Positions 1-30,208 of a DNA stretch of 64,000 bases are shown here, one piece after another; the stretch's first letter is position 1, and every line of letters begins with the position of its first letter. Under the pieces are notes generated by a model. That model was given only the letters and a program-made list of their open reading frames with translations. It searched no databases and was not told the origin of the DNA. The DNA comes from Marsupella aquatica. Lineage: Eukaryota; Plantae; Marchantiophyta. The stretch covers positions 1 through 64,000 of the forward strand of contig OZ316898.1 in NCBI GenBank assembly GCA_973895155.1, in the 5' to 3' direction. Both the position numbers and the translations under genes were made by a program.

Positions 1-489
1 CAGAGCACACATGGAATCTGATGTCAGTAAGGCCCTTTTCTATTATAACTAACCTACCGCTAATTGGTCAAGTCTAAATTGTGCTAGAATGGAAGAAGAC
101 TGATCATAACGCTTGTGCTTTTCAGTGAGTATCGACCCAATTAAACAAGCATCTTTCAAGGAATGAACGAAATCTCTCAAATGAATCAGAGCAATGAGTG
201 AGTTGCTGCGATTCTTCTTCCTTCAAAGTCCCTACATATTGCTTTTTGATGTGAAGCTACCACTACCCGACATATGGACAGGGGCCCTAAGGCACTTTCT
301 GTCGGCCTCGTTTCCACCAGGCTGCTCCTACTTGGATGTCAATGTCTACCAAGGTGATTGCAGTGGTGATGCCATAGACCCTAATCTGTCACTCCGAATA
401 ATGTTGGACCCAGCAAAGCTGAGCTTAGAATAAACAATTGGGCAGCAACAGGCGTTTGATACCCAACGACGATTGGAATGGATTGAATG

Positions 490-531
490 CCTCTCTCCTC
501 TCCTCTCCTCTCCTCTCCTCTCCTCTCCTTG
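490..531. repeat. (CTCTC)n microsatellite
   Basis: cctctctcctctcctctcctctcctctcctctcctctcctt is visible directly. It explains the spurious GEERR repeats in overlapping ORFs. Confidence 0.9.
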
Positions 532-575
532 TCTCTGCTGCTGCCTTTTGAGCTGCAATCGGAAGCGCTTCATCT

Positions 576-750
576 TTCTTCGAGAACTCTGGCGATAGTT
601 CACATTTTGACCCGAAGCTGCCCTGACGAGATGTCAAGATCTCTCTGGTTTGAGAGTCGAATGACGGATTGTGAATGAGTGAGTTGACAAAGATCCACAA
701 ATGATTTTTGACCTGAAACGACTTCACCATCATGTGAGCCTTCCGAATCA
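576..750 (-). pseudogene. TOP2: Isolated fragment of DNA topoisomerase II (ATPase transducer region)
   Basis: Translation VKNHLWIFVNSLIHNPSFDSQTREILTSRQGSFGSKCELSPEFSKK matches the conserved eukaryotic TOP2 segment (NHLWVFVNxLIxNPxFDSQTKExLTxxxxxFGSKCEL). No flanking TOP2 sequence is seen. Confidence 0.8.
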
Positions 751-926
751 TAATGAAGTCCTTCCAAAACATCAAACACATTAGTCTTCAGGATGTCAAA
801 GTGTTCCCTGAAGAGCTTCTCGGTTTCCTCTTCAAATTTAGTTGCTGCAAACTTCCGAGCAAGTTTGAGCATCTGCCGTACATTATCTACTCCTAATCGT
901 TGGCAAAGCTCAGCCTCGCAAAACTC
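751..926 (-). pseudogene. Fragment resembling the C-terminal BTB/POZ-BACK helices
   Basis: EFCEAELCQRLGVDNVRQMLKLARKFAATKFEEETEKLFREHFDIL resembles the CExxLxxxLxVDNVxxxLxLA pattern of BTB-BACK proteins. It abuts the TOP2 fragment in another frame. Confidence 0.45.
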
Positions 927-2463
927 AGCGTCGATGATTAATTAGCATCTAGAACAAATTGGAAGGGATATCTAGTGAAGGCCGATCGCGATGTAGCAGT
1001 GATGACAAAACAACGTTGTAGGTCCTGTTTGGAGGCCAATTCAACGACAGTGGTTTGTATCAGCCCATCAAAAGCGGAATAATGATCAGCGGAGGTTAAC
1101 TATTTTTGTAAATTTGTAGCAGGTCCTAGTACAGAACCATAGTGCTGAAAGTTGCCCTTTCTTTCCCGGGGGGACATTTATGACAGGACGTGATTGTTTC
1201 TCTCACCTAGAGATAGCCGATGGCATCACAATCGCTCTGGTGCTCCAGCCAAGCACAGCTCCTTGTTCCCAGAGCTACTGTCCAGAGTGCAAACTTACGT
1301 CGTGGCAGTCCTAGTGTGAACCAACCTTGATCAGGCCCCAAGAAAGCTGACAGAGCGGCTACATACTGAGGCTTGATTCCAAGCTATGCAAATCTTGCAC
1401 TTATGTGAGCATGCTTTGTCCCAGATGGGAACTCTGCCCTCTGGGTCCGGCCCCGTAGCACCTGCTTGTCCCAGCTGTTTATCGAACTGTCCCCATTGCC
1501 CATTTGATCCGGCACTGTACAGCTGTAGCCCCTTTTCCTCCTTGCCCCCGCACTTTCAAATTGCAGCTCGAATGAATGTGCACCGACTGAGCAGCCAGGT
1601 GGATCAAATCAGCTTTAGTATTATGTCAGTCTTTGCCTGCTGTTGCTCCCTTTGGCTCAGCATCCAAAGCTGCTGACTACCTCGGGCTTGTTTGATAGTA
1701 GGTAGGCATGGGGTCACTGCGAGTTGTTGTACTGTCCTGTATACTTTAGTGGCGCACCTCCTACCGAAGTATCATGTCTTTCCCCTGCTCAAATCGGCTA
1801 AGGTTCTGTACCATAGCATCCGTCTATCATCGGTATCAAGTTCTAATCACATTGGCTTGCTACAACATTACTCCGACAAGTCTCAGTGACCCAACAGCAT
1901 CGCGATCCCTAACTACTCCGCCAAATTTTCCAAAGCTCAGCACAATATTGACTTTACACGTGACCTCTTAAGCAAACCATTCATTCCTGTAGACTCAAGC
2001 AACCGATGCTCAGAGTCTCATCGCCTTCGCAGATCATTGGGGGGCAACAAACCACCGGCAGCACTTGAGAGATAGAAGGGATGCATGCCGACGCGGGAGC
2101 TCAATCACCACTGAACAGCCCCGCCTGGCATCACCATTCTCTGGCTCGTGGGGTCCCGCCTTCATTTCTTCATCGTTTTGCTTCTCGTTGGACTATCGCA
2201 GCTTGAGTTTTTCAATTGGGCTTGTTACCAGTCTTGTCGTCTTGAGCTTCATCGAGGAGTCTCTAACATGTGTACTTGTCGCTCGTCTGGTTAGATCGAC
2301 TTTGTATCGACTGCTGCTGCCAACAGATCCTTGTGGTGAGTTCTCCCTTCTCTAGTTCGAATGTAATATCTTCCCTCCATTCTGTTGTGCCTCCCCCTAG
2401 AGTCCTGTGGGCAGGATAGAGATGGATCCTCCGAGCTTGTATAGGAGGAGAGATTGATGGACA

Positions 2464-2724
2464 ATGGTTCAATTAGCAAAGAGGCGATTTGATCGCATGC
2501 GTAAGTATGCAGAGAATGATGTCATTGTCCCGGCGAAGTTAAAAGAGTTTCTGAACGCAGAGCAAGGTGAAACCGAGGTTACATTGGGTGATGCCGAGAA
2601 GATCATCAATGAGCAGATGGCTCACGAGAATACGATATTGATGAAAGCGAAGCACTCCTTCACATTGGATGCATTCCTCCGGTACCTTCTCGACCCGGTT
2701 GTCAACATTGCTTACTTAAACAAG
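2464..2724 (+). pseudogene. Orphan exon of phosphoinositide-specific phospholipase C (N-terminal EF-hand-like domain)
   Basis: KYAENDVI...LKEFLNAEQGETEVTLGDAEKII...FTLDAFLRYLLDPVVN is typical of plant PI-PLC N-termini. It ends at donor AAG|gtgaga (2724/2725). I did not find the following X-domain exon (HDMxxPLSHY) in the window. Confidence 0.7.
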
Positions 2725-3730
2725 GTGAGACGAAACTAGACGCGTCAATTTTTCCGTTTCTCATGTCTCGAGTAAGGCACGAATTAGAGTGGAGCCAATC
2801 CAGTACTTCACGGTGAATTCTAGCACACTATTGTGGCTGCGGTAGTAGGCAGATCGGTGCAGATTGACTTGTGTGTTCCGACAATGAGTGATTCTATAAA
2901 GCTGTGAAGAGGGTCTATATATGGCGGATCTTTATAGGTACGGATGGCTCATAGGCAGTTTTGTTGACTTTCGTGGTCGGAAGCTGCCTTCAATCTGTCC
3001 CGAGATAAGGCTGAGAAATGCTTGCCATATTCAGGGGAAACTAGGTTCTCATTGTGTGTAAATTAAGGCTTCAAGAAAAAATGACTAGTCTTGAGGGCTA
3101 TAGTTCAATTTTTATTGATCATTGATCTGAGGTTTTGTCCTTCTTCTACATTGCAGGATGTTGTGCATCTATAGTGAGAAATAATTATATCTCGTCATTG
3201 AGTTTGATGACCTGGACTTCAAGAGGCATGGACTTCTCCCCACATTTTGAAATTACATTCTGGTGGGTGCAATAGGTCCAATTTATATGTGTGGTGCAAC
3301 GTTACATTGAAAAACCTCAATTGGTGCTTCTACTAGAGCAAGGTTGAGGTGAGCCGGGGAGTTGGAGTTTCTATCTAATCTTTGCAATTCATATTTCAAT
3401 GAGATCTGTGCAGACACATTGACCGTGTATTTTTCTACAAGTTTTATTCTTCAAAAATCCAAAAAATGACATTTCCACAACCCACTCAAGTAAGTAACAT
3501 AATATCTATTTTTTTCAATCATTTTTAAAAAAATTATTAATATAATAGACATTATGGATTTAAGTAACTAAAAAATATTATATTATTACAAGTTTATATT
3601 AATTTTTTAATCAAAATTCTGATTGGTAATAAATATTTACTATATTTAATAGTGTAACAGTTTTATTTAAAAAGTTTGGAAAACAATTTGATTAGTACTG
3701 ACACAAAAATGCAATTTGACAATTTTGCAG

Positions 3731-5107
3731 ATGCTCCATAAACGAAGGGAGAGGAGAAAAAATGAAAATAAATTTCATGAATATGGCGCCGAATTTTCTA
3801 TCATAACATTTTGTTCAATATGGGATTATCTAAGCAAATTATGTGAATCTAAACAACAATTTATTTTATATTGGATTTTAAAAAATGAAAATATTTTTGT
3901 ATATTTTGTTACACACATTTTACAAATAAATGTGTCCAATTTTTCAAGAGCTAAATTTTTGAATGGGTATAACAACTGCAGAAGTGCAATTTCACCAATT
4001 CTCCCTCTTCAAACACTTCAACAAACCGAGAAAATCTTTCATCATCATCAACAGAGACAAAAATTGCCTCCACTATTGAAAAAATTCATGGGAAAATTTC
4101 ACATCCTTAACCTATCCCAACTCCGTACCTTACAAGTAGAGAGGGTAGCTTCTTGTAAAGTTGACAATACATTCTCTTCAACACAAGTAGAAGTGCAACA
4201 AATATCAAAATCACAACTGAAAAAATTGACTGGAGTGATAATGGGAAATTGGAATGAAGACATGACTAAAACCAATCATAGTAATCTTACATTCACATTT
4301 GAGCGTTATCCATCAAATTTTCTAGTGATAGAGAAATCTGAAAATATTGTTTACTTTTACGACAAGTCAGGGAAAAAGCCTTGGCTTGTAGCAATGCTTA
4401 TGCACCAACAAATATTGGGAGTGACAACATTACAATTCATTCGAAAACTTTTGAGTGCATTGTTTGTTGCTCATTCTCCATTTCAAAGAGGCGAGGGGAA
4501 AAAAGCTTTTGACAGCTTCATGACAGGATATGGTCCTTGGAATAGCAGTTACATGGGTGGCCGTTTGACTTATTACACACACCAGAAGAAGATGAATACC
4601 ATTTTCGATGATTGCCTTGATGTCAAAGATTTTGAGAAGTGGATCGATAAATATTCACATATTGAACTTATGGATATTATATTGGGGCTTTATATGTGGT
4701 GGTGCCCAGAGATGATAGAGTGCTTTTTGGAATACTCTCATCCGTACTTACTATCATCTGATGGTGACAAATATCATGGAAGTGAAGAGCAGATAGGGGA
4801 GAATGTTAGACCTAGTACTTACCAATTATATATAAGTGAGGATTATTGTGTGCAAACACATGCTGATGATGATGCAACTGACTTCACCTTAGCGTATGCT
4901 AGTCATCCTGACCATTTCCTTTCAGCAATCGATTTTGTAATTCCAGAGTATGGAATTCGATTGCCAATTAGAGATGGAAATCTATTTGCATTTCGGAGCG
5001 ATGTTGTTCATGGTACAGGCTTTAGAATGAAAACATCGAATCCTGCATATGTTGGAGCTATTACCGTGAATAAAAACCTCAGCAGACTGATGCAAAAATT
5101 ACATTAA
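3731..5107 (+). CDS. TET/JBP-like Fe(II)-dependent dioxygenase (copy 1)
   Basis: Uninterrupted ORF (track 3716..5107). The ATG at 3731 follows acceptor ttttgcag|. Motifs: MTGYG, then YISEDYCVQTHADDD (HxD at about 4859), DFVIPEYGIRLPIRDGNLFAF and VVHGT (distal His at about 5009), i.e. the HxD...H triad in a TET/JBP-type DSBH context. Homologous over its full length to 16076..17518. Confidence 0.8.
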   Translation: MLHKRRERRKNENKFHEYGAEFSIITFCSIWDYLSKLCESKQQFILYWILKNENIFVYFVTHILQINVSNFSRAKFLNGYNNCRSAISPILPLQTLQQTEKIFHHHQQRQKLPPLLKKFMGKFHILNLSQLRTLQVERVASCKVDNTFSSTQVEVQQISKSQLKKLTGVIMGNWNEDMTKTNHSNLTFTFERYPSNFLVIEKSENIVYFYDKSGKKPWLVAMLMHQQILGVTTLQFIRKLLSALFVAHSPFQRGEGKKAFDSFMTGYGPWNSSYMGGRLTYYTHQKKMNTIFDDCLDVKDFEKWIDKYSHIELMDIILGLYMWWCPEMIECFLEYSHPYLLSSDGDKYHGSEEQIGENVRPSTYQLYISEDYCVQTHADDDATDFTLAYASHPDHFLSAIDFVIPEYGIRLPIRDGNLFAFRSDVVHGTGFRMKTSNPAYVGAITVNKNLSRLMQKLH

Positions 5108-5989
5108 AATTATTGTGTAGATGTGCTCTCCCGGGGCAAGCTGAGAGCGCTTGGAGGGGCTACTCAAAGTGGTGAGTGCTCGTAGGGTGGAGATGACACC
5201 ATGGTCATTTTGGATTTAGCCTGGTCATCATTATATTTGGTATTGAAATTCAGATTCTGACGTCATTTTAGCGATTCTTTCAAGAAGAGTAAGGGTTTGG
5301 CATAATCTCGTTGAAAAATGGAATGTTGTCATCATGACTTTGCAATATTGGGCATGTTGAGGTGTGAAAGGTAAGGCATGTTACTTGTTATGGGGGTGAT
5401 ATATTGAAATGGGGAGGTTTTGCAAGATAGAAGAACTCAAATAAATCAACTCAAAGGTGGAATTGACATGATCAGCACACGTACCCTTGAGAGTAACAAA
5501 CACTTTGATGATGAGGCACCAACCACAAGTTGCAAACCCCAAAGGACAAGGGTGGGTGTGGATGTCCGGAAAATGGTCTTATTCTTGTGGGGTTAGTGGT
5601 ATGCATTCATTGTATGACTTTGTAGAAGAAACATACAGGCAACTTCACCTTGTTTAGTAAATCACCCTTATTGGGCTTGTTACTTGCTTCCCATGGGCTG
5701 AAGATACAACTGTAGAGATTCTATATAGGTGGGCATCCAAACTCATCAAGGGCATAGTTACACTTGATTTGCGTGAACACCTCCAGTCATCAAATTATTG
5801 AATGTTGTCCAAACTAATCTTCTAAGCCATTTTGGTTTGCCATGACACAACCCATGCAGACCATTGAAATAAGCACATGTGAAACTGATTTTTTTGAATA
5901 CCCTGTCTGATTCTTGTAGGCCCGCTTGTAGGTCCATTACAAGGAGAGTGAATTGCAGAATTGGCCATTGTTTCTAACGGGTCTGGAAG

Positions 5990-6665
5990 GCTTGACAAGG
6001 TTAGTACATCTTAACACTTGCATTTTATGATTGACATGAGGGCATTCCAGCACTCATGTTGCAAGGCAGGGGGCTGTTTCACCTGGATTCAATTATGATA
6101 AGAATTACATATAAAAGTAGTTCTAAAGGAAGAATTAAATTCACATCCTTTATTGCCTCCTATTATTTTCACCTTCCCATGTACTTGTTTCGTCTTAGGG
6201 TATCACAATATTTCTGGGGGCGGTGGTGGTTGGAAAAGGTTGGCACATTTTGACACTTGCATTTAACAATTGAGATAAGGGCATTCCGGCACTCATGTTG
6301 CAAGGCAGGGGGCTGTTTGACCCGGAGTCAATCATACAAAAATTATATATAAAAGTAGAAAGAAAAAAAACCAAATTCACATCCTACATTTCCTCCTACT
6401 GTTTTCCCTCTCCTGCTTGTTTCTATTATGGTATCATATTATTTCTAAAGAAGGAGGGGGGCAGCTCAAAAAAGTTAATATATCTTGACACTTACATTTT
6501 AATGATTGAGATGAGGGCATTCCGGCACTCATGTTGCAAGGCAGGGGGCTGTTTGACCCGGACTCAATCATACAAGAATTACATATAAAAGTAGAAAAGA
6601 AAAACCAAATTCACATTCTACATTTCCTCCTACTATTTTCACTTTCTTACTTGTTTCTATTATAG
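5990..6665. repeat. Tandem repeat, about 238-bp unit, about 3 copies
   Basis: ggcattccrgcactcatgttgcaaggcagggggctgttt recurs at about 6040, 6279 and 6515. Confidence 0.85.
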
Positions 6666-9296
6666 TTGTAGTTTGCCAGAGAGAACCAAAAGCACACTTT
6701 TATGTCTCTAAACTTTTATGAACCCTAAAGTTCCACTGACCATTTGTCTTATGAATCTATACAACACAGCGGTGTTATATGAATTCACATGGTCCGAGAA
6801 TTCCCAAGATTACAGGGATTTATGAAAATATACATTTTGACTAGGATGACAAAGATTTAGAGTAAAGAATTCTTTATTTTCACACAAAGTGCATTTTGGA
6901 ATGACATGGGAGTTTAAAAGTTTACATGGATATCCTCTACGAATGCATGATTCTTTCAACATCCCATCCGAGCTTATGACTCTTTTTGGTCTTTCGCCGT
7001 GGTTTAAAAAGCAAAAGCCAACGCCCGCTGAATGACTCCCTTTTTGCTAAAAGACGTTAAAACAAAAGCTCAATTTAGTCAATTGACACATTAGCTGTCC
7101 GCTATAAAGTTGGATTGCACGACATCACGAGTGACGTGTTTACCATGTTTTGGGAGCTATTCCTTCACAGTAGCTGTAACCTTCTCCCAAGCCTGGTGGG
7201 TTGTGTTGTTGAGAGATCGCTACTACTACAGTACTCGTTCTGTTGACGGACGATCAGCTGGGCAGGAAAGCAAGGAGCGATACAAATCAGACTTTGAGAT
7301 TTGTAACTCGATTCTGACCTCTGTGTCAATTAGTAACATTTGGCAGTACTATCTGCGGGTTTCCTTCTCAAGCTATCACCAATGGAGAAATCGAGTCGTT
7401 GGTCAGTCTGTTTTACTGGACCATTGCACCTTCATTCGCCGGTGCCCCATGATCAGAAACCAGCGTCAATTGTATCAGAATTTGTGAAATCAAGATCTAA
7501 AGTGCCTTGGTCCTCTTAAAGCGACAGGTTGCCAACCAGCTTTCATAGCAGATCGGAAGGAAAAATTGAACTAAGTCTGCCTCACTGAAGGTGCATGTTT
7601 ACGGATTTTACACGTCTTGCCTCTACCACTTCTGTTGACATTTTGTCCTAGCTCAGTGACTGAGGTAGACTTGTGATGATATCCGAAACTCTATGTTAAG
7701 TGTATGCGGAAAAGAGATAGTCCTATGAATATCTTAAGAACGTCCTTGAACTAAAGGACATGAGGGGCATTTTGACTAAAGCTTTGTACAGATCATTTAG
7801 AGTAGGTCCATATCAATAGACATAAGTTTACGGCTGGAGTTAGTAGCCATTCGGATTAATACAACACGGCACCTTAGGCATACTCCAAATCCCACCTTGT
7901 AATTTTACTGGAGACCCCAGTTTTGATCAGGTTGATGGCACTTTGTCTAGCTACTCAATTGATTCAGAGCCCTACACCAGCTTGCCAATTTGTGATGGCA
8001 TAAATGAAGGAATTTTGCGTCCTCATCGGCCGCTGCAGTCTAGCTCGTCTACCAGCAAGACAAGCGCGAACCATACTTACACCAATAGGTTCAGATCCAT
8101 GATTTAGGAAAATAACCTTTTTTGGGAAGCGTTCGCGGCACCAGATGGGACCCGGCCCCATGCCTATCGATCTCATGAGTGCCTCTGTAATTATTTGCCT
8201 TGTTTTGAGCTGTCACTTACATAATCGTACTGTCTGGAGTCTCCAGACAAGAAGTTTTGTTTGATTTGCCTTGTTTTGAGCTGAGGCAAGAATCGTACCC
8301 ACATCTTAATTTCAATGAAGAGCAGATTGAGACTCTGCAATAATACTGCAAGAAGTCGCCCACGTACGAAAGGTTGTTCTGAAATTGGCTAGTGACCGAG
8401 TTCCAGTAATAATGATTCAACTTAGATTACAAACGTTATAGACGAGGAGAGAAGTAGTTTTCACCGCATTCTGCAGACCACGACCGACCTAATCTGAAAC
8501 GTCGAGGCTCTTATTCACAATGAGGAGTAATCCCCAAAATCAGGCAGCTTGAAATCTGAAACCTTGGATAATAAGTGGGCTGCTATGGCAGTATAGTGTT
8601 GACAACACCTCAGAAACACAGACCTCTAAATCTTGTGGAGATGAAAGCACCGACTGATTTCTCACATGGTAAGGGACTCCATTAATCTTAATAAACGATC
8701 ATGATATGGCCAGGAACTAAACTGTAGCAGAAGATAGTTTATTGCGTTGATCTTTATGCACCACCAAGCCAGTAGCATCTTCTAAACCAAGTCAACTGGA
8801 TAGAAAGTCGGAATTAGGTCCAGAACATTATTTTGTAGCTAAACAAAAACAATTACGACACAGGAGCACATATCCACCATCATTTCTTATGTTTTCCTAA
8901 ATTGCCATCTACAGAAAATATCGTAGATGTCCCTAGCCCTCATATGCAGAAGGCATTCACGAAATCACATTCCATTTCCAATGACAAGAGCATAGCTTAT
9001 AGGGAAGAGTACAACTGCAGCAGCTCGAAACAACCTAGACAGACATTGAAGGAGAAGTATTTCGCCCCGTACAGAGTGCGCATTTACACATTGGAGATTC
9101 GAGAAGAATTTTGATCTCGAAATACTTCACACTATTGTGTCATGTTGGTCATGCCAATTTGCACCTTGCTGCAAATGCATGGCTGGCTGCTGGCGCGGCC
9201 AAATAGAAAGGGGGAGTGTTGGGTAGACATTAGTCGTATGCGGGTGCTCATCTTGCTCTAAGATAGAGGCGATGGGGCAAGGGTAGGCGCTGAGGT

Positions 9297-9939
9297 ATGA
9301 TTAACAAAATATCGAAGCGCCTGCCGATTTGCAACAAAGGGAGTAATGGGCCGAATGACCCCAATGAACCAGGATCTGTAGGCGCCTCAACAACTGGAGG
9401 GGTTGGACCTGCAGCTCTGGCCCCAGCCCCGGCTGCTGCATATTTAGTTAATCTGCTGCGGGAGCTAGGGCTGCTGTAGGCCCCAGTAGCAGGAATAACG
9501 CTTTGATCAACGGCATCGGTACCCCAAGATTTGGACCAGGAAAGGAGAAGTTGTTACCAAACTTGACTCACAATGGTTGAGGTCCCTTTTTCTATCCTCT
9601 GCCTGCTTTCAAAGACCTTCCAAATTCTGACAGGCAGAACTTGTTCATTAACAGCTCCATCTTTGCTGTTACACTTTTGACTTCACTGACCCGACAAAGA
9701 ATGTCAATGACAAAGAGATTAAGAAGCAAACCTTAGTGGAGCTGATGGAAGATGCGACATCGGGAACAGGGAAGTTCACGGAGGCTGTGTTCGAAGATAT
9801 CACCAAAATGCATGTAACAAGCCTGTTTCGTACGCTACCCCCCTCCTCTCATGAAAATACCGGAGTTGATAACTTTGATCCCAAAGAGGAGGATCCAACC
9901 TTAGAACCGGCATGGCCCCATCTTCAAATACTGTACGAG
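9297..9939 (+). pseudogene. 5' fragment of a PP2A regulatory subunit B' (B56) gene, disrupted
   Basis: PAFKDLPNSDRQNLF, CCYTFDFTDPTKNVNDKEIKKQTLVEL and LFRTLPP...FDPKEEDPTLEPAWPHLQILYE are B56 hallmarks. It has stops and frameshifts upstream and ends after ILYE (gag|gtacgt). Confidence 0.85.
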
Positions 9940-13259: not shown

Positions 13260-15170
<1,911 letters not shown>

Positions 15171-15864: not shown

Positions 15865-16042
15865 ACTTTATTTTGAAATATATATCTGGCATGCTTTTCT
15901 GATTATTGTTATTTAATAGTTCCAGATAGTTTGGCCGGAGATATGTATTTTGAAATATGTATCTGGCATACTTTTCTGGTTATTGTTATTTAATAGTTCC
16001 AGATAGTTTGACTGGAGATATGTATTTTGAAATAAATATCTG
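15865..16042. repeat. About 73-bp tandem repeat (about 2.4 copies) in the AT-rich intron upstream of TET-like copy 2
   Basis: tattttgaaatat...tatctggcat...ttattgttatttaatagttccagatagtttg repeats. Donor aag|gtgagt at about 15696 and acceptor ttttcag| at 16075. Confidence 0.75.
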
Positions 16043-16075
16043 TATAAATTAAAGTATGTTTTTGGAATTTTTCAG

Positions 16076-22300: not shown

Positions 22301-22319
22301 TTCTCAATTCTCTGATTGA

Positions 22320-25300
22320 TCACCGAAATTCAGGATACTTGATCCTCACAATGGTTGCTACAAGACGCATAAAATTGTTGCCCAGAGCCTCAGGACTTGT
22401 AGACACAACCCATTCACACAGCTCCTGGTCACTTTTCCCTTTGATTTCAGGAATTGCTCGGAATAAATCGCTCTGTATGTTATCAAATCGCCATGCCTTC
22501 CACACAAAAAGCCGCAATCTCTCTCCTGATTCATCTTCACACTGATCTCCATACAGCCCTTCATGAAATCTCATCCCACTAGGCTGGTGTGGGAAGTGAC
22601 ACTTGAAACAAGTGTCTGGTCGAGAAGGAAACTTGTTATCGCAATTTGCACGGTTGTGTGTTCCTAGACACTTCACACATCGTCCCCGTACATAAGGACA
22701 TTGCAAAATACCATGAGGAACACTCTTTGAGAGGGGACTCCAACACATCAAGCACTTTTTCCTATCCCCAGCAAATTTACGGATGATACAAATCTTATTC
22801 ATGGCTTCGTCAATTCTTTGTTTGATGAGTGTTGGTCGAGCTCTTGCCACAACCGTGGTTGTGGTTCCTTTGCCTTGGGATGATCCGAGTGATGATGCTG
22901 GTGTTGTTCTTTCACCTGGTGCTGTAACCCTAACACTCTGTCCTCCTTGTATGTTTTGGGAGATGCTCCCCTGAGATACAATTTCAACCACTTCTGACCT
23001 AGCTTGTGATAATTCTTCGGCCTCATATTCCATTGGTAGTTCCTGATTGTCTGCTGCTTGGGAGCATATGTCACAAGGAATTGCATCCGGGATGAGGTAA
23101 CACATCTGTGGCTTACCATCAACGCTAGCATGTAGTGCAAAGCGACGACACATTTTTGTCTCCTCAATCCATTTGTTTGGAATCTTGAAGTTGGAGTCCA
23201 TCCTCAAGGCCTCATTGCGGTAGCTGGAGTTAGAAACAATAGTGCTTATTGCTAATAAACCATCACGCCCAGCTCGGCCAGATTCCTGATGAAATTGCTC
23301 AAAGGACCTGAAATTACCTCTGTGAATTACAAGTCTGATTGACTTGTAATTATAGCCAGAACCAATGACCCCAGTTGCCACCATGATTTCACAACCCTTC
23401 GACTCCCACTTCTTCAAGGTTTTCACGGTGTCTGCTGTGCTACATCCTGCATGCAAAAATGTACAGCACAAGTTCCTGGCTTCGAGTAGCTTTGCCATCT
23501 CTTGGACTTCATCTCTTGTTAGGCAATAGACAATGGCCCGGTCATGAACCAGGCTAGATCTCTTCCAATCTTGAAGCTGTCTAACTATTTCTCCATCCAT
23601 GTCAGGCACTTCCACAACCATGTATCGGATGTTTGGCCTAACAGTAGAAGAACGAACCCAATGTAATCTTGAACCCAAAGTCAGTTCGATATCAGATTGT
23701 TGTGTGGGTGGTAATGTCGCTGTTAATCCTATAATTTGACAAGGAACTTTCATTAGAGAAATCAGATTTCTCATTTTTGGACGGAAATGACACTGTAGTG
23801 TATGAATCTCATCAAAAACAATCGAATGCAATCTTTGTGTAGCTTGCAAGTGGTTTGCAAAGACACCAAATGTATCTGAATCAGCTGCAGTCTCGATAGA
23901 TACAAAAACAATTGCAGGTGTTACTCCTATCCCGAGTGCAAATCCACTTGTGAACACAGTGTGACCAATTCCTGCTTTTCTGCATTCAGATAAGTGACCC
24001 GATATGAGAGATTTGAATGGGACTACCACAATCACTGTTTTGTCCATCAATGTGGAAGGGGCCATGAAAATCAATGACTTTCCTGTTCCAGTGGGAAGTA
24101 CAGTTACAAAATCCACAGTGTTTTCAATAGCCAAAGCAACAGAGATTGCTTGTTCAGTTGACCTCCACCTTTTGTGACCCAACTTGTGTAGAGCTATGGA
24201 AGCTCTTATACTTGTGTCGTGACAGATGTGCAGTGCCGAATCAACATCTCCCACAACTGATGTTGATGGTTCTCCATAGGCAGGGCAATAAACAACCCTT
24301 GTCTTGCTTGGAACATGATCAATTTCAAGCTCAATGTCATGACGTGGACGTAGAACAGTAGTGGTTCTTGGAAAAGGATCTAGTGTGACTTCCCTGCAAC
24401 CTGTTGTTGAGCTATCCAGATGAATCAATCTTGGGGACTTATCCGAAAGATTAAGCAATGCATGCCACTTATCTGTAAATATTCGGAATGCTCTCAAGAG
24501 ATGTCCATCAATAGCTCTTAAATCTTTTACACTTTGAGCATAATGATGTCCCATTGTAGCTGTTGTATGTCCACCTGCCACATCTACAATATCATCAAGA
24601 TCTTGAGTGCGTTGGTCTCGAATCTTTTCTGAAAAAAATGCTGCTAGGTGTCGGTATTCTGAAAGCCCGAATGTGACTCCACAACGCTTAAAGAAATTGT
24701 TGTGTATGCTCTTGGAAAGATCATGTGCATCTTGCTTTTTATCCATATCAACGAACCAACAATCATCATAATTACGGGCAACCTCCTTTCCCCATATTTT
24801 CTGTGCAACATAAGATTGTGTAGGCCTCACCAAACAAAAGTATACCAGAAACAGAGTTCTTAAAGAACTTGGAAGAAACCGTATAAGTGGTTTCATTGGA
24901 GCACCTGTATTTGCACCTTTATGATAGGTTTGAAAGAGCGCTATTGTATGATGCTCTAACAATTTTGTTGTTGGATCATCATCTGGGCCTGCTGTTGCCC
25001 AATAAAATGACCTCTCGCTTGTGGCTGTGTTGCGAATCAAGAAACTGTTGTACTCTTCGCCCCTTGCTGGTAGACCGGCAGTGAAATGTATAAGCAGATT
25101 CAATTTTTCTTGTAAATCAGAGCAAGCAGTCATCCACTTATAAAGTGTGATATCATTCCAAATGACATCATTTCGATCTGTCCGCCCGAGAATAAAGTGT
25201 CCTCTAATCTTAGGATCAACAAACAAGTGTGTTAGTAGATCGAGGCCATGTTGCTGAAGAATCCGGTTGCGAGGATCTATGACAAAGTTGTACCCAACTT

Positions 25301-27281
25301 CTGTGTTGTTGACATCGTCGTAAATAGCACGACTCTCCTTAAGTAATTTGTCAACCCAATCTGTTCGGAGACCAAGAAGCACATCACAATTTAAAATTGA
25401 GTGGGCTTCTTGAATAATAGCATGCACCATATCTCGAAAATTGTCGATTGTAATAGATTCACCATCAACTAGACATGCTGTATTATTGGCATTCAATGGT
25501 ACTAGTCTTGGCCATACTGGAGTCCCTGCAGTAATCCTATTTGCCAAGCGCAGAGATTGCGATACAATAGTAAATGGAGTAGGTAGTGCTATGTCACTTA
25601 AATATTGAAGAAGTCGATCAGCTTCTTCATTAAGAATGGTGCTTGGGTTTTTATGCCAAAAACATTGTGCAAGGTGCATCAAAATGGTCACCCTAGCCCA
25701 ATATTTGAGTATCGCCATTGGTTGTGTAAGATGACGAACATGCCGAAATGAATACTCTTCTGCTTCTGGACTGTGGCCAACTTTTATGAGTGAATGTAAA
25801 ATAAGAAACCGAGTGAAAATACAGTTCGCTGCTCTTCCTGCTTCAAGTGTTGCAGGCATCTTTGGAGTCCAAAGATGAATCAACACATTATGTAGAACAG
25901 CTAAATCAACATTGTCAATAGAATTGTCATCTAATTCATTGAGTTGACTCATGAATTTTTGAAGAGCAATTTCCATTTCTTCTCTGTTTGTTTGAAAAAC
26001 ATGAATGTCCGAACTAAGCTCATTAGAAGATGATCGAAGCAAGCAGAGAATGAATTCTGTGATTATATCACAGTACCTACTCCTTGATGATTTTGAGTTC
26101 AATTGATTGAATCCCACTGCAACATCATCATTGATATTTGTCTTCTCCACTAGTCTTCTCAATCTGTAATCCACCTCTTTAAGAACCAAATCTTGTACAT
26201 TGTTCATGTAGATAGTCACCACTTGACTGACATATGAGAGTGGAGATTTGCCCTGCTTTGGTGGTGGGAGCATCTGTGCTTTCACCTGCAAAAATGGTAC
26301 CCCTTTTGGCATGAATTGGGCCGCAAGCTCATGCCATTTAGACTGTGCTAGCCATGGAGTTAGCTCAGCAATTGGAGGTAGAAGTTCTAACCGCAAAGAC
26401 TGAAAATGGTCATCAAACTCCTTTGTGATTATAGCCCTCAAACTTTTAGATTGCAAGTGACAGTCATCCCCATCGAGATTGAGATTGTGATGTTGAACAC
26501 TGAAGTATTTGAGGCCTATAACACGATCTGAGAGGATTTGAACTTGGCATTCACTCTTCACATTGACATAGGACAACTCAGGATGTTTTCTCAAACGATG
26601 ATTGGACATTGACCTTTTCTCCCCACAATAGTAGATGCATTGTTTGCAAGAAAAGCCGTGTCGAATGACAACACCTGGTACTGGAGAAAGCAATGCAGCT
26701 GGTGGATCTCTTGTATATGGTAATATGGATGTATCATCCATGCTTGTAAAAGAGAACTGTTGTAAGCTCCTCAATAGTTGATGACTGTCGTAGTCTGATG
26801 CTATTCGATGACACCTTGATTTCTCCCGTTGATGCTTTTGAACATGATGAATGATATTGATATTTTCATTGTATATGAGTACCGAATGACACTCTATACA
26901 TACAAGGAAAACCAATTCCTCATGACGAACAACGCAGAGATTAACACTTCTCAAGATCTCTGGTGTACCAGAATGATCTGGTGTAATGCACAATCCTTCA
27001 TTAACCGCCAAGTCGTGTGGATCAACAAATCTTTCGACTTGATTAACATGGATTGTGTCATAGTGTCGGCGAAGACTATCGCCGGGTGTGTAATACTGAG
27101 AACACATATTATCGGGGCATGCGAACATCCCATTTTCAGACTTGTGGAGGATCTCCACAGTGCCATCGCAATGCTTGAATTTGAACGTCATCCTGTGCTC
27201 AAAACGTTTGTGAGCATCTCTTGCTCTTGCTGATTGAAAAATCTGCTCACACGCACTACATGGAAAAATGGTTGTCTCCAT
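22320..27281 (-). CDS. Zn-finger + tyrosine-recombinase-like + RecQ-family helicase fusion protein (resembles fungal telomere-linked helicases)
   Basis: Intronless 1653-aa ORF. N-terminal C2H2 fingers (CSAC..HKRFEH; CPDNMC..HYDTIH; CIEC..HHVQKH; CKQC..HRLRKH). YR-like series AGLPARGEE / YHKG / EYRHLAA / GGH..HHY. RecQ/SF2 motifs LPTGTGKS, DEIH, LTAT, HAG, VAT and QESGRAGRDG, the RecQ Zn module CRR..C..CDIC, and C-terminal Cys/His knuckles. Confidence 0.9.
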   Translation of the reverse strand: METTIFPCSACEQIFQSARARDAHKRFEHRMTFKFKHCDGTVEILHKSENGMFACPDNMCSQYYTPGDSLRRHYDTIHVNQVERFVDPHDLAVNEGLCITPDHSGTPEILRSVNLCVVRHEELVFLVCIECHSVLIYNENINIIHHVQKHQREKSRCHRIASDYDSHQLLRSLQQFSFTSMDDTSILPYTRDPPAALLSPVPGVVIRHGFSCKQCIYYCGEKRSMSNHRLRKHPELSYVNVKSECQVQILSDRVIGLKYFSVQHHNLNLDGDDCHLQSKSLRAIITKEFDDHFQSLRLELLPPIAELTPWLAQSKWHELAAQFMPKGVPFLQVKAQMLPPPKQGKSPLSYVSQVVTIYMNNVQDLVLKEVDYRLRRLVEKTNINDDVAVGFNQLNSKSSRSRYCDIITEFILCLLRSSSNELSSDIHVFQTNREEMEIALQKFMSQLNELDDNSIDNVDLAVLHNVLIHLWTPKMPATLEAGRAANCIFTRFLILHSLIKVGHSPEAEEYSFRHVRHLTQPMAILKYWARVTILMHLAQCFWHKNPSTILNEEADRLLQYLSDIALPTPFTIVSQSLRLANRITAGTPVWPRLVPLNANNTACLVDGESITIDNFRDMVHAIIQEAHSILNCDVLLGLRTDWVDKLLKESRAIYDDVNNTEVGYNFVIDPRNRILQQHGLDLLTHLFVDPKIRGHFILGRTDRNDVIWNDITLYKWMTACSDLQEKLNLLIHFTAGLPARGEEYNSFLIRNTATSERSFYWATAGPDDDPTTKLLEHHTIALFQTYHKGANTGAPMKPLIRFLPSSLRTLFLVYFCLVRPTQSYVAQKIWGKEVARNYDDCWFVDMDKKQDAHDLSKSIHNNFFKRCGVTFGLSEYRHLAAFFSEKIRDQRTQDLDDIVDVAGGHTTATMGHHYAQSVKDLRAIDGHLLRAFRIFTDKWHALLNLSDKSPRLIHLDSSTTGCREVTLDPFPRTTTVLRPRHDIELEIDHVPSKTRVVYCPAYGEPSTSVVGDVDSALHICHDTSIRASIALHKLGHKRWRSTEQAISVALAIENTVDFVTVLPTGTGKSLIFMAPSTLMDKTVIVVVPFKSLISGHLSECRKAGIGHTVFTSGFALGIGVTPAIVFVSIETAADSDTFGVFANHLQATQRLHSIVFDEIHTLQCHFRPKMRNLISLMKVPCQIIGLTATLPPTQQSDIELTLGSRLHWVRSSTVRPNIRYMVVEVPDMDGEIVRQLQDWKRSSLVHDRAIVYCLTRDEVQEMAKLLEARNLCCTFLHAGCSTADTVKTLKKWESKGCEIMVATGVIGSGYNYKSIRLVIHRGNFRSFEQFHQESGRAGRDGLLAISTIVSNSSYRNEALRMDSNFKIPNKWIEETKMCRRFALHASVDGKPQMCYLIPDAIPCDICSQAADNQELPMEYEAEELSQARSEVVEIVSQGSISQNIQGGQSVRVTAPGERTTPASSLGSSQGKGTTTTVVARARPTLIKQRIDEAMNKICIIRKFAGDRKKCLMCWSPLSKSVPHGILQCPYVRGRCVKCLGTHNRANCDNKFPSRPDTCFKCHFPHQPSGMRFHEGLYGDQCEDESGERLRLFVWKAWRFDNIQSDLFRAIPEIKGKSDQELCEWVVSTSPEALGNNFMRLVATIVRIKYPEFR

Positions 27282-27999
27282 CGATCCTACACATCAATGT
27301 CACAAGCTCGTGCCATAAATTGCCATGTACTATCGGGAATAGATTACAAGAAGCGCAGGAATAGATTACAGGAAGCTCATGCAAGTGTTCTTTGTCTCTA
27401 GTATCTACCAAGCTACTGAACTCTCAAGCATAGTTATAATTGAGCTTGCGCTTGAGTTCTGATCATGATGTTACAAGGTAGTCTATTGGAGTTCAGTTCT
27501 CTGTAAAAAATTCAGAGCAATGTAATAAACTAAAACCGTAAAGATTTGGAGTCTGAAGACATCAATGTAAAGCTAATAAATGTGTGCACAAAAATAGATA
27601 ATCATTGCATGGCCAGCTATGCAGTCAACCCCCAGAGCACAACTGACAGCTACATGCCCAATGCATTTTGCATACATATATAGATTCAAAATCATAATCC
27701 CATGCATATATTCGCATTTGTTAAGAGAATTTAAGGAATTATGTCCTTCATGAATTAAAGCTTGTCCCAATAGATTACTTTTATTTAATTTACCTGACAA
27801 AATATTATGGGGCTTGGAAGCTTGTAGAATGATTCTGTTCAATTCCCAAAGGTAGATTATCGCAGTTCAACTTGCCGCCGACATTTGCAAAGTGACTAGC
27901 TGCAACCACTGTGTAATGCGATACATGTGGGCAACCACTGTATAATGTGATGTGGCAACTCTACCATCTAATGAAGACAAAATGCTTGAACTAAGGACA

Positions 28000-29460
28000 T
28001 CAATGTTTGGTTGTAGATTGGGTTAGGAAATGTGGGTTGTGGCATGGGTTTAGGGTCTTATGTTGGGAGTTGAGAAAGACTGGAGTTACAAAATTTGGTG
28101 TGGTGTTGGGGCTGAGGGGGTTGGGAGTTGTGTGTTGGGGATTGAGGGGTTGTGGGTTCAAGGGGAAGTTGTGTCTTGGGTTGGGTAGGTTGAGAGTTGT
28201 ATGTTGGGGAGCTTGGTTGCAGATTGGGTTAGGAAATTTGGGTTGTGGCATGGGTTGGGGGAGATGTGTTGGGGGTTGAGAAAGTCTGGAGTTAGGGAGT
28301 TAATTTGTTGTAGAGTTGGGTGTTGGGGGTTAAGGGATTCATTTGGGGAGTTGTGTCTTGGGTTGGGTAGGTTGAGAATTCTGTGTTGGGAGTTGAGTAA
28401 GTTGGGGAGTTTGGTTGTAGGTTAGGTTAGGAAATGTGGGTTGTGGCATGGGTTGGGGGAGATGTGTTGGGGGTTGAGAAAGTTTGGAGTTAGGGAGTTA
28501 ATTTGTTGTAGAGTTGGGTGTTGGGGGTTGAGGGATTCATTTGGGGAGTTGTGTCTTGGGTTGGGTAGGTTGAGAGATTTGTGTTGGGAGTTAACACAGT
28601 TTGGAGTTACAAAATTTGGTGTTGTGTTGGGGTGTGAGGGGGTTGGGAGTTGTGTGTTGGGGATTGAGGGGTGTTGGGGATTGTTGGGTGTTGGGGGTTG
28701 AGGGATTGGAAGTTGTGTCTTGGGTTGGGTAGATAGATAGTTGTATGTTGGGGGTTAAGGGAGTTGGGGAGTTATGTGTTTACCGGTTGAAGGAGTTTGG
28801 AGTTTGGTTGTGGGTGGGGGTTGACATTGTGGGTTGGGGGAGTCGTGGGTTGGGGATTGAGGGGTTGTGGGTTCAAGGGGAAGTTGTGTCTTGGGTTGGG
28901 TAGGTTGAGAGTTGTGTGTTGGGAGTTGAGTGAGTTGGGGAGTTTGGTTGTGGGTTGTGGCATGGGTTGGGGGAGATGTGTTGGGGGTTGAGAAAGTCTG
29001 GAGTTAGGGATTTAATTTGTTGTAGAGTTGGGTGTTGGGGGTTGAGGGATTCATTTGGGGAGTTGTGTCTTGGGTTGGGTAGGTTGAGAGATTTATGTTG
29101 GGAGTTGAGAAAGTTTGGAGTTACAAAATTTGGTGTAGTGTTGGGGGGCTGAGGGGGTTGGGAGTTGTGTGTTGGGGATTAAGGGGTTGTGGGTTCAAGG
29201 GGAAGTTGTGTCTTGGGTTGGGTAGGTTGAGAGTTGTGTGTTGGGGGTTGAGTGAGTTGGGGATTTAATTTGTTGTAGAGTTGGGTGTTGGGGGTTCAGG
29301 GATTGGAAGTTGTGTCTTGGGTTGGGTAGGTAGACAGTTGTATGTTGGGGGTTGAGGGAGTTGGGGAGTTATGTGTTGGAGGTTGAAGGAGTTTGGAGTT
29401 TGGTTGTGGGTGGGGGTTGACATTGTGGGTTGGGGGAGTTGTGGGTTGGGAGTTGCCGGG
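28000..29460 (+). repeat. G/T-rich, strand-asymmetric degenerate tandem array (GGGTT/GGGGTT/GGGAGTT motifs)
   Basis: The + strand is almost C-free. Blocks such as agttgtgtcttgggttgggtaggttgaga and ggcatgggttgggggagatgtgttgggggttgagaaag recur many times. Confidence 0.9.
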
Positions 29461-29844
29461 GAAGTTGTTTGTTGGGATAGAGACAACCATGTTGTAAAAG
29501 ATGGACAAGAAAGATGATAAAGAAAATCCAACACAAAAGGGAAAATCAACACTAAACCTTTGAACCTTTGATCCCTGAGTATAGACAGCCACAACAAGGG
29601 CAGACTGACACATTGGGCAGTCAGTTGTAAAAGATGGACAAGGAAGATGATAAAGAAAAGCCAACACTTAGTCTAGAAAGAGGGGAAATTCAGAGAAAAT
29701 CTGGACTGTCAATAAGAAGAGATAGATGGGCAAGATCATGTGCAAGGACTTCAATTCAATCCAATCTTCAATGGAAAATCCCAGTTCTTACAATATACGG
29801 TTAACATAATTATGTATACAAATCATCATTCCTGCTTATATGTC

Positions 29845-30055
29845 ACAAGTATCTCCTCGACAAGACAAGTCAACAATAAATATCAACCTGCTTATCCGCC
29901 ACAAGTATCTCCTCGATAGGACAAGCCAACAATAAATATCAACCGTGAAAAGTCAAAAATAAATGTTAGCCGTGGAAAGTACCTCCTTGACACGACAAGT
30001 CAACAATAAATATCAGCCATCGTAACAATAAATATTAGCATGGAAAGTCAACAAT
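29845..30055. repeat. Short repeated motifs near the putative element end
   Basis: gacaag(t/c)caacaataaatatca recurs at about 29864, 29920 and 29994, with partial copies nearby. Confidence 0.7.
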
Positions 30056-30208
30056 GAATGTTGGCCGTGGATTTTAAATGAACGGGCCAGATGCTTGTAT
30101 ACACACGACCACACCATCTTCTTCACGACCGCCACTACACTTGTTACAGGCCTCCAAAACAGCCACACAGCCGCTGCACTACGGCCGTAATGCGCCGATA
30201 ATATATAT

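Follow-up and report, generated by a model that had tools for sequence, protein, structure and literature searches.

The question raised by this locus is whether the first 30 kb of the window, that is, of the whole analysed stretch of 64,000 nucleotides of Marsupella aquatica DNA, constitute a single mobile element. In the initial annotation, a cargo transposon of more than 30 kb was proposed there, with a YR-RecQ gene at one end and TET-like genes as cargo protecting it from methylation. The features described in support of that proposal are all present in 1-30,209: short repeats inward of the cut, a G/C-skewed array, a recombinase-RecQ open reading frame as the first gene inward, a mosaic of gene fragments with two intact TET-like genes, and no continuation of the interrupted host element. 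The interpretation built on them is partly supported. A single transposon is not demonstrated, and two separate things are present. There is about an even chance that the locus represents a displaced repeat block of the telomere-linked helicase (TLH) type adjoining resident TET-like genes. The first part is a TLH unit of about 8 kb. It comprises the intact TLH gene and, upstream of it, a spacer of 0.7 kb, a G/T-rich minisatellite of 1.5 kb and short repeats over a further 0.75 kb, which end at a discrete point, 30,209-30,211. The second, a patchwork on the 3' side of the TLH gene, combines small tandem repeats and pieces of three housekeeping genes with two TET/JBP-like genes that are ancient and AT-rich. 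The features are located as follows.

425-781, minus strand: topoisomerase II/DNA gyrase B-type gene fragment, one exon-sized piece (Pfam DNA_gyraseB, E 1.8e-8, profile positions 84-166 of 173)
2,464-2,739, plus strand: phosphoinositide phospholipase C (PLC) fragment, EF-hand-like part only (Pfam EF-hand_like, E 3.1e-7)
3,716-5,107, plus strand: intact TET/JBP-like dioxygenase gene 1, 463 aa, GC 0.35 (from homology to gene 2)
5,994-6,666: tandem array of 2.8 copies of a 236-bp unit, located between the two TET-like genes (TRF and self-BLAST)
9,736-9,951, plus strand: PP2A regulatory B56 subunit fragment (Pfam B56, E 3.4e-13, profile positions 58-116 of 413 only)
15,869-16,042: tandem array of 2.3 copies of a 77-bp unit, immediately 5' of TET-like gene 2 (TRF and repeat search)
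16,076-17,518, plus strand: intact TET/JBP-like dioxygenase gene 2, 480 aa, GC 0.32 (from fold search)
22,320-27,281, minus strand: intact TLH-type gene, 1,653 aa (open reading frame without intron or stop)
22,881-24,188, minus strand: RecQ helicase core, residues 1032-1467 (NCBIfam recQ_fam, E 5.3e-47; Pfam DEAD, 1e-16; Helicase_C, 2e-15)
24,492-25,184, minus strand: family-specific middle ("TLH") domain with the tyrosine-recombinase-like motif set R740, K788, R877-H878, H905, Y914 (conserved motifs)
26,583-26,924, minus strand: C2H2/OrsD zinc-finger region, residues 120-233 (Pfam OrsD, E 3e-7)
about 28,000-29,470, plus strand: minisatellite rich in G and T and almost free of C, organized in higher-order units of roughly 200 and 400 bp (TRF rows 28,116-29,455)
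29,476-30,209, plus strand: subterminal compound repeats ending in the discrete end of the block (sequence inspection, TRF and motif count)
30,197-30,211, plus strand: terminus of the block, consisting of a TA-rich stretch and then GG (15-mer unique in the window)
30,210-31,178, minus strand: old truncated LTR-family piece, the first roughly 520 bp of a 4.2-kb family (83-87% identity to 55,045-55,562)
55,045-59,269 (putative extent), plus strand: reference copy of the LTR family, showing the truncation (self-comparison)

The large gene belongs, by its sequence, to the fungal-type TLH family, characterized in the literature by a TLH domain, C2H2 and RecQ; the hosts listed in the papers retrieved are only fungi and one choanoflagellate. 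The protein is 58% identical to P0001 of Calypogeia fissa and, across 64% of its length, 24% identical to P0002 of Steccherinum, which has the same arrangement of OrsD, DEAD and Helicase_C. The RecQ core, the OrsD/C2H2 region and the middle domain all have counterparts in both proteins. Homology between C. fissa and window DNA ends exactly at the ends of the TLH open reading frame. The gene is the first inside the 30,209 boundary, with transcription directed away from that boundary and no real open reading frame between it and the cut. Regarding its designation as "YR-RecQ", the RecQ half stands (recQ_fam E 5e-47, with DEAD and Helicase_C), and the tyrosine recombinase half holds at the level of motifs only. 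In the middle domain, all 14 sequences compared carry R740 and K788, and the later motifs are retained in the consensus. Such R...K...R-H...H...Y spacings are typical of tyrosine recombinases (Cre, XerD, lambda Int), and since the motifs are kept from liverwort to fungi, the protein may be an active enzyme able to move DNA itself, which counts against a subtelomere-type reading. No recombinase family was recovered for this domain by Pfam, by PDB sequence search or by hhalign against Cre, lambda Int and P2 Int; a fold prediction (pLDDT 32) gave nothing, and the Pfam search contained no DUF3435 "captain" signature. An ESM-Atlas feature search with a fungal TLH homologue returned recombinase-fold families only (Phage_integrase, NDC10_II and DUF3435, at 0.83-0.86), which serves as a lead only.

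The minisatellite begins 0.7 kb upstream of the TLH start codon. It contains 683 G, 518 T, 228 A and 42 C (46% G, 35% T, 3% C), including TTGGGG 33 times, with a GC skew of up to 0.69. Beyond it, a roughly 133-bp-spaced repeat pair lies near 29,492 and 29,625, followed by a 56-bp unit present twice (29,831-29,944), a 27-bp unit in 2.1 copies (29,923-29,980) and a 17-nt motif that occurs four times in 29,869-30,015 and nowhere else in the window, where 0.33 occurrences are expected. An 828-nt public contig from run X1 reproduces 29,410-30,211 without difference and then continues for 26 nt that are unlike the window at that point and absent from all of it. In this single short contig, the shared 0.8 kb stops at the same base (±2) before another flank, so that the array-side end is apparently discrete and shared, an outcome in favour of the initial annotation. 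The GG that forms the first LTR bases in the window is common to both known flanks. A search of 1-30 kb recovered no further terminus, no inverted or direct terminal repeat, and no other occurrence of the subterminal motif cluster or of the terminal sequence.

The TLH unit is repeated in multiple copies that are almost identical. Public contigs of two organism labels, in records of 3.7 and 4.6 kb, differ from the TLH gene of the window at 1-3 positions over the 1.9-2.8 kb compared, and at position 26,501 the letter of the window accounts for 200 of a word depth of 872 in run X3. Length variants of the G/T-rich array occur among the public contigs, as do variants in the unit number of the subterminal repeats (a 164-nt skip at 29,831-29,996). 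In each of the four runs, contigs covering the terminal 0.8 kb reach a word depth 1.3-4 times that of the TLH contigs, and this unequal abundance counts against one unit.

At the joint, the TA run stops at 30,209 and LTR-family homology begins at 30,210. Here, 30,210-30,332 is an 83% match to the reverse complement of 55,562-55,440 and 30,785-31,178 an 87% match to 55,431-55,045, with an insertion of roughly 450 bp at 30,333-30,784 between them. Because the 55-kb copy continues past 55,562, the cut is real, as the initial annotation had claimed; its position is 30,209/30,210, one base to the right of the 30208/30209 given there and in agreement with the junction string quoted there. Among the contigs listed, uninterrupted LTR continuation just before 30,210 is present in 8, 12 and 19 records of runs X1, X2 and X4, respectively, and self-comparison revealed no such continuation within 1-30,209. 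Word depth is 3e4-5e5 in the LTR piece to the right of the joint versus 1e2-1e3 to its left. Transposable elements cut in this manner, with the other half missing, are common at transposon-rich chromosome ends and are usually attributed to ectopic recombination (PMC1635262). To the right of the TLH block, at least 34 kb of nested retrotransposons extend within the window, and no telomere repeats were found in 1-30 kb. This copy is therefore not visibly at a chromosome end, which counts against a subtelomere-type reading.

The discrete end and the near-identical copies would also fit a compact, Crypton-like TLH unit of gene and arrays, about 8-10 kb long, whose own recombinase-like domain would move it via a circular intermediate. 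Such a unit would have entered the LTR and later lost its other junction by deletion or ectopic exchange, with the TET-like genes as unrelated neighbours. The conserved motif set with its recombinase-type spacings and the Atlas lead point in this direction; the 2-bp GG at both known joints could be a crossover core, and solo ends or non-autonomous copies could account for the higher word depth of the terminal 0.8 kb. However, the 22 kb downstream of the TLH gene contain no second end, the profile, PDB and hhalign searches and the fold model yielded no recombinase family, and a 2-bp overlap arises by chance about once in 16. The same anatomy is also present in fungal TLH blocks, for which transposition is not demonstrated. 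This explanation is considered unlikely.

The TET-like genes lie 4.8 and 17 kb downstream of the TLH gene and share about 25% identity over their full length (E 2e-55). Gene 1 is 34% identical to P0121, falls in a family of 60 representatives and has no Pfam match. For gene 2, an AlphaFold model from a 16-sequence alignment (pLDDT 73) gave as its top Foldseek matches fungal CcTet (7vpn/8jkk, E 6e-6), CMD1 (7cy4), human TET2 (7ne6) and Naegleria NgTet (4lt5), and H399-x-D401 and H449 are nearly invariant. With GC contents of 0.348 and 0.322 versus 0.418 for the TLH gene, and with such low mutual identity, the two look like old separate residents. Distant relatives of the family sit amid ordinary host genes, and neither gene is flanked by a detectable transposase or inverted repeats. 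The proposed linkage of TET genes to the recombinase-RecQ gene finds no support elsewhere: no TET relative was found near the C. fissa TLH gene, to a distance of about 9 kb, or in 16 metagenomic TLH loci. Nor did the idea that TET cargo shields the element from methylation find support, since the CpG observed/expected ratio of the block (0.54) does not exceed that of the adjacent retrotransposons (0.58; GpC control near 1.0) and thus carries no sequence trace of protection. The open reading frames neighbouring the topoisomerase II fragment have no profile match, and no PLC X/Y catalytic domains occur between the PLC fragment and the next gene.

These results bear directly on the original proposal of one giant element of more than 30 kb, with its right end at 30,209 and its left end beyond the window start, mobilized by a Starship-captain-like recombinase domain in the TLH protein and carrying the TET-like genes as cargo. 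It accommodates a discrete end apparently common to another flank, the TLH gene as first gene reading inward, subterminal motif repeats that resemble protein-binding sites, and a cut LTR without continuation in 30 kb. Against it, one end is known, without terminal inverted repeat, direct terminal repeat or second motif cluster, and neither a target-site duplication nor an empty site is demonstrated. Furthermore, its parts differ in word depth, the TET-like genes are compositionally foreign to the TLH gene and anciently diverged, the TLH relatives found elsewhere lack a TET neighbour, the interior is pieced together from gene fragments lying on either strand, CpG decay is as in any methylated repeat, and the captain signature is absent from the Pfam results. 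The proposal is accordingly judged very unlikely. Slightly more improbable still is an assembly misjoin at the TA run between the TLH block and the LTR, leaving no biological junction to explain: among the contigs listed none bridges the joint with at least 31 nt on each side, the right side is repeated thousands of times, and passage of the X1 contig into the other flank suggests that the joint is absent or rare in that run, but the listing leaves aside more than 10,000 short pieces, a joint-specific contig would measure at most 60 nt and be easily lost to filtering, LTR homology starts cleanly at one base, and run X1 may be another accession.

With the displaced TLH-type block as the preferred reading, such blocks would spread and stay alike via recombination among chromosome ends and other heterochromatin, through break-induced copying or ectopic exchange, possibly assisted by their own recombinase-like/RecQ protein. 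One copy would have become joined to a broken old LTR, and the TET-like genes would be long-term residents of the same transposon-rich compartment, not cargo.

Among known systems, the fungal DNA transposons that encode TET/JBP (KDZ, Plavaka, hAT7 and IS3EU; PMC12730594) likewise place TET/JBP-type genes in transposon-rich DNA near a putative mobility gene. In those, however, the TET gene is carried within a compact element that encodes a DDE transposase and has terminal inverted repeats (PMC12730594). Around the TET-like genes of the window both are lacking, and the closest mobility-type gene lies at a distance of 4.8 kb and belongs to a different kind. Starships of Pezizomycotina (PMC10104507) share a recombinase-like gene placed first beside one end and reading inward, a proposed size of tens of kb and unrelated genes behind. 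By comparison, no DUF3435 captain domain was detected in the TLH protein and its recombinase-like part is fused to RecQ, and the window offers one known end without demonstrated terminal repeats, target site, empty site or travelling cargo. Cryptons resemble the TLH unit in the tyrosine-recombinase-like motif set, the absence of terminal inverted repeats and a possible short core (GG) at the joints; unlike it, they measure a few kb and encode no RecQ helicase, and recombinase-family membership of the TLH protein is not supported by profile searches.

The closest systems are the TLH regions I/II of Magnaporthe oryzae, grouped with the TLH ends of Fusarium, Ustilago and S. pombe and with yeast Y' elements. 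In the subtelomeres of M. oryzae, the helicase is flanked by "helicase-associated" tandem repeats (HAR) with a sharp and shared outer edge (Rehmeyer et al. 2006, PMC1635262). The HAR units are G/T-rich and telomere-like, the "far boundary" lies at least 17 kb from the telomere, and the 3' end of the gene points toward the telomere (PMC1635262), as it does in metagenomic TLH locus L016. Fungal subtelomeric TLH genes with tandem arrays and discrete shared boundaries are thus known, with transposition not demonstrated for them (PMC1635262). The window differs in that its host is a land plant (a liverwort), no telomere is visible over 30 kb, a cut LTR and not unique DNA adjoins the boundary, and TET/JBP-like genes follow downstream. 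Since the joint abuts a cut transposable element and has no telomere-like motif, the parallel is anatomical only. Within that anatomy, the two agree in the combination of C2H2/OrsD, family-specific middle domain and RecQ, in multiple nearly identical copies, in a compound G/T-rich array upstream of the start codon, in a discrete outer edge of the repeats, in the window apparently common to copies with different flanks, and in the truncated nested transposons that surround them.

The reading preferred here, put forward with confidence and doubt in equal measure, is that the block to the left of 30,209/30,210 would be a displaced copy of a telomere-linked helicase (TLH) repeat block of subtelomere type, joined to a broken LTR, and that the TET-like genes beside it would be old residents of the same compartment. 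The features concerned are as follows.

3,716-5,107, plus strand: TET-like gene 1, 463 aa
16,076-17,518, plus strand: TET-like gene 2, 480 aa
Left of the TLH gene, both strands: single-exon-sized gene fragments of topoisomerase II/gyrase B, phospholipase C and PP2A-B56
Left of the TLH gene: several small tandem repeats
22,320-27,281, minus strand: TLH gene
Between the array and the open reading frame (ORF) for TLH: spacer of 0.7 kb
Beyond the spacer: G/T-rich array of 1.5 kb (46% G, 35% T, 3% C)
Inward of the cut: short repeats with 56-bp and 27-bp units, from tandem-repeat detection
30,209/30,210: block end
30,210-31,178, minus strand: cut LTR, a truncated family copy (reference copy 55,045-59,269, plus strand)

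The TLH ORF at 22,320-27,281 (minus strand) is intact, with 1,653 codons. Its RecQ-type core (recQ_fam, E 5.3e-47, residues 1032-1425; DEAD and Helicase_C also match, NCBIfam and Pfam) is accompanied by an OrsD/C2H2 zinc-finger region (Pfam OrsD, E 3e-7), and the layout described for telomere-linked helicases in the literature consists of a TLH domain together with C2H2 and RecQ motifs. In the liverwort Calypogeia fissa, an unnamed product of 1,097 aa is the closest protein (58% identity), followed by P0002 of the fungus Steccherinum (1,813 aa), which has the same Pfam layout and aligns over 64% of the length (E 1.9e-46); moreover, for the middle domain 16 relatives turned up in metagenomes. 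Judged by its sequence, the gene is a member of the TLH family, with a RecQ core, a C2H2 region and a family-specific middle domain shared with fungal members. In the literature searched, TLH genes are reported only from fungi and one choanoflagellate, and no recombinase is mentioned in them. It can be observed that the C. fissa locus (L001; CBCUJL010000074.1, 8,679-13,633) holds a full-length TLH homologue, of which the public annotation covers only the last 1,097 aa, with a frame change or interruption in the match near codon 105. At a metagenomic locus, L016, a TLH fragment (59-481) lies approximately 0.8 kb from a TTAGGG array (1,300-1,359) at the contig end, and the gene reads toward the telomere.

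For the middle domain, the window sequence was aligned with that of C. fissa and with 12 relatives from metagenomes (14 sequences). R740 and K788 are invariant, and the motifs around R877-H878, H905 and Y914 are retained in the consensus; the order and spacings of these residues are those of tyrosine recombinases (Cre, XerD and lambda Int). A language-model feature search with the domain of the fungal homologue returned only recombinase-fold families (Phage_integrase, NDC10_II, Integrase_2 and DUF3435) at 0.83-0.86, which is a lead only. Neither DUF3435 nor Phage_integrase gave a Pfam match in the TLH protein, even at E 10. No recombinase relatives were retrieved from the PDB by phmmer or by hmmsearch with the 14-sequence profile, nor did hhalign give a match to a few aligned recombinases (Cre, lambda Int and P2 Int). 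The AlphaFold model of the domain, built from 3 sequences only, has a pLDDT of 32. On its motifs the domain is termed recombinase-like. The “YR” part of the name YR-RecQ used in the initial annotation is seen at motif level, as a conserved set of tyrosine-recombinase type; Pfam, the PDB sequence searches and hhalign gave no match. A compact TLH element driven by such a recombinase, for which the motif set would speak and against which these searches stand, is regarded as unlikely.

In the stretch from the TLH gene to the joint, flanking tandem-repeat arrays occupy 28,000-30,060, with a discrete boundary at 30,209-30,211. It is a trait of the TLH family that helicase-associated tandem repeats flank the gene and stop at a discrete boundary common to different copies, the sharing here being seen in one contig of run X1. 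The start codon lies 2.9 kb from the block end with only low-complexity ORFs between, so that the helicase is indeed the first gene inside the end, reading inward, as first described. A 17-nt subterminal motif is present in 4 copies, compared with 0.33 expected. The family trait of a position next to a telomere is not seen in this block, as there is no telomere repeat in 1-30 kb. The sole telomere repeat in the window is a 2-unit CCCTAAA match at 60,288-60,301, just past the second of two tandem arrays that flank the 4.2-kb LTR copy (53,155-54,374, 111 bp x11; 59,270-60,200, 122 bp x7.5, C-rich). Derivation of the G/T-rich array from a telomere was also considered and was rejected as unproven, since just one TTTAGGG and four TTAGGG occur in its 1.5 kb.

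Logan contigs from four public runs (X1 to X4, with two organism labels and from two studies) were compared with window positions 25,201-31,200. An 828-nt X1 contig is equal to 29,410-30,211 with zero differences and then continues with 26 nt unlike the window, a flank that is absent from the whole window. In this single contig the terminal 0.8 kb thus halts at the same base (±2 nt, GG being common to both joints) beside different sequence. The block end at 30,209-30,211 is discrete and, on this comparison, apparently common to one further context, in which the proposal that other copies share a terminus at 30,208 holds. It should be noted that two contexts are too few to tell whether this is the end of a transposon or the place where a rearranged copy joins its source. 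As an exact pattern, the terminus had no match in JGI metagenome contigs. Contigs of the TLH stretch from both organism labels show 1-3 differences to the window over the 1.9-2.8 kb compared (records of 3.7 and 4.6 kb), and at position 26,501 the window's letter accounts for 200 of a word depth of 872 in X3, which together imply several nearly identical TLH copies. In all four runs, contigs of the terminal 0.8 kb are 1.3-4 times as deep as those of TLH; word depth gives a coarse estimate, which, read literally, makes the parts of the block unequally abundant. Inside the TLH ORF, long X1 and X2 contigs with different organism labels begin at the same position, ~23,371; some TLH copies may branch off there, through truncation or divergence. 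Within 23,371-27,977, in the part compared, the window and the runs labelled as two different organisms are separated by only 1-3 differences; either the two labels stand for a single species or for closely related ones, or the gene varies unusually little from one to the other.

Both TET-like ORFs (463 and 480 aa) are intact and are ~25% identical to each other. They are located in AT-rich islands, with GC of 0.348 and 0.322 versus 0.418 for the TLH gene. A model of TET-like gene 2 from a 16-sequence alignment (pLDDT 73) gave as best Foldseek matches Coprinopsis CcTet, Chlamydomonas CMD1, human TET2 and Naegleria NgTet, with E values of 6e-6 to 4e-4 and TM scores of only 0.3-0.48; H399 and D401 (HxD) and the distal H449 are conserved. 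By this predicted fold and the putative HxD...H iron site, TET-like gene 2 is classed as a predicted TET/JBP dioxygenase. A word-index protein search gave no match to it. A HMMER scan yielded 60 relatives of the TET family, nearly all on 1-4 kb contigs without usable context, and the few on long contigs (amoebozoan, chytrid) are found among ordinary genes. In the searches made, no literature naming TET/JBP together with bryophytes was found. The mosaic of gene fragments with two intact TET-like genes, reported in the initial annotation, is confirmed, the fragments being those of three housekeeping genes. Across 1-22 kb, no transposase domain was detected in the ORFs of at least 65-90 aa, and no convincing inverted repeats surround either gene; without flanking inverted repeats or transposase, a reading of the TET-like genes as compact transposons was rejected. 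Right behind TET-like gene 2, 19 nt at 17,869-17,887 are the inverse complement of a unit of the G/T-rich array, a likeness that may be chance, and are followed by a 22-bp G-rich tandem repeat at 17,932-17,976.

That the 30 kb forms a single element could not be demonstrated. No second terminus and no second copy of the terminus was found in the window, and 1-31 kb contains neither an inverted or direct terminal repeat nor a second cluster of the subterminal motif. DNA similarity between C. fissa and the window starts and stops at the TLH ORF, with no flank conservation outside, and within ~9 kb of the C. fissa homologue there is neither a TET relative nor a skewed array. Likewise, the 16 metagenomic TLH loci (contigs up to 16 kb) contain no members of the window's TET family. 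The block has a CpG observed/expected ratio of 0.54 and the three genes have 0.41-0.48, compared with 0.58 in the retrotransposon-rich right half and a GpC control near 1; the depletion in the block is the usual mark of long-term cytosine methylation. The initial annotation had proposed a candidate element of more than 30 kb, in which TET-like cargo linked to the YR-RecQ gene may protect from methylation. What remains of this proposal is an end that is discrete and apparently shared, with the recombinase-like helicase as its first gene. Support is lacking for the size, in view of the single end, the missing terminal repeats and an interior heterogeneous in GC, for the linkage, in view of the C. 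fissa and metagenomic loci, and for the protection, in view of the CpG ratios of block and retrotransposon side. In a wider form of the idea, the TLH protein would be a functional recombinase-helicase by which a large block is moved or copied from chromosome ends to internal heterochromatin or the reverse, with the block end at the TA-rich tip at 30,209-30,211 and the TET-like genes regularly taken along; this is considered quite improbable, and a giant cargo element as such very improbable. If the TLH protein did move a large TET-carrying block, it would represent a plant counterpart of giant cargo elements and a mechanism for the spread of fungal TLH subtelomeres.

At the joint, gataatatatata (30,197-30,209) is followed by ggctgtggag, starting at 30,210. 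In a sensitive self-comparison of the window, 30,210-30,332 is an 83% match to the reverse complement of 55,562-55,440, and 30,785-31,178 an 87% match to that of 55,431-55,045. Because the copy at 55 kb extends past 55,562, the copy at the joint is interrupted at 30,209/30,210. The clean truncation originally described is therefore real, one base beyond the figure given for it and identical to the spot marked by the string quoted with it; the same self-comparison agrees that the continuation of the host element is missing in 1-30,209, and the other half of the cut LTR was not found in 1-31 kb. In public contigs of the four runs, word depth to the right of 30,210 rises ~100-fold or more and uninterrupted LTR sequence ahead of 30,210 is present in many contigs, indicating that the LTR family is very abundant and that the window copy is truncated. 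No tRNA or other RNA genes were found in the window as possible integration targets. An assembly misjoin at 30,209/30,210 retains a slight probability, because X1, whose contig runs on rather than halting at the branch, seems to contain the window's joint rarely or not at all; none of the public contigs listed bridges the joint.

Other elements are located to the right of the joint. A young Ty1/copia element occupies 44,836-50,621, its gag-integrase ORF (45,455-48,295) and RT ORF (48,189-50,093) lying between 100%-identical 165-bp stretches (44,836-45,000 and 50,457-50,621). Two direct copies of ~2.2 kb (37,511-39,730 and 42,458-44,738), 97% and 89% identical in two segments and each with a 26-bp tandem array, could represent the two LTRs of a further element. 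In the same retrotransposon-rich half, 33,329-35,146 (minus strand) holds an intact 605-aa ORF with no Pfam match.

The significance of the block lies in a land plant with an intact multi-copy TLH gene and fungal-type repeat arrays, whose block has a sharp edge that is apparently shared, beside TET/JBP-like genes. The window contributes this edge and its sharing, together with the anatomy of the arrays and the linkage tests. If the recombinase-like motifs were active, end-to-end copying of helicase-bearing subtelomere blocks would become a testable question, and if the TLH-TET linkage were collinear in several copies, plants would for the first time show a hint of a large element of cargo type.

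One or two features of the block recur in each of the Starships, the Cryptons and the TET-bearing DNA transposons of fungi, but defining ones do not fit. The TLH gene is placed like a Starship captain, which is the first gene at one end and reads inward. However, the captain is of DUF3435 type, whereas here there is no such Pfam match and DUF3435 appears only as a feature-space lead (0.83) for the fungal homologue; Starships also have two ends, terminal repeats and a target-site duplication, compared with one end and no terminal repeats in the window. In KDZ, Plavaka, hAT7 and IS3EU, the TET gene is surrounded by terminal inverted repeats and the gene of a DDE transposase, neither of which was found here. 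By anatomy, the TLH subtelomere of Magnaporthe oryzae is the best match. There, blocks of “helicase-associated” tandem repeats lie on the flanks of the TLH gene, with some units G/T-rich and telomere-like, and the compound array stops 181 bp from the start codon (PMC1635262). The array end is a distinct “near boundary”, where unique sequence takes over at seven chromosome ends, and a second discrete “far boundary” lies at least 17 kb from the telomere (PMC1635262). The 3' end of fungal TLH genes faces the telomere (PMC1635262), and the metagenomic locus L016 is TTAGGG-capped in the same orientation. Many transposons near chromosome ends there are without their other half, which is attributed to ectopic recombination (PMC1635262). 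For a displaced TLH block copy joined to a broken LTR, Magnaporthe anatomy combined with ectopic recombination would account for every feature that had been read as transposon evidence, without transposition.
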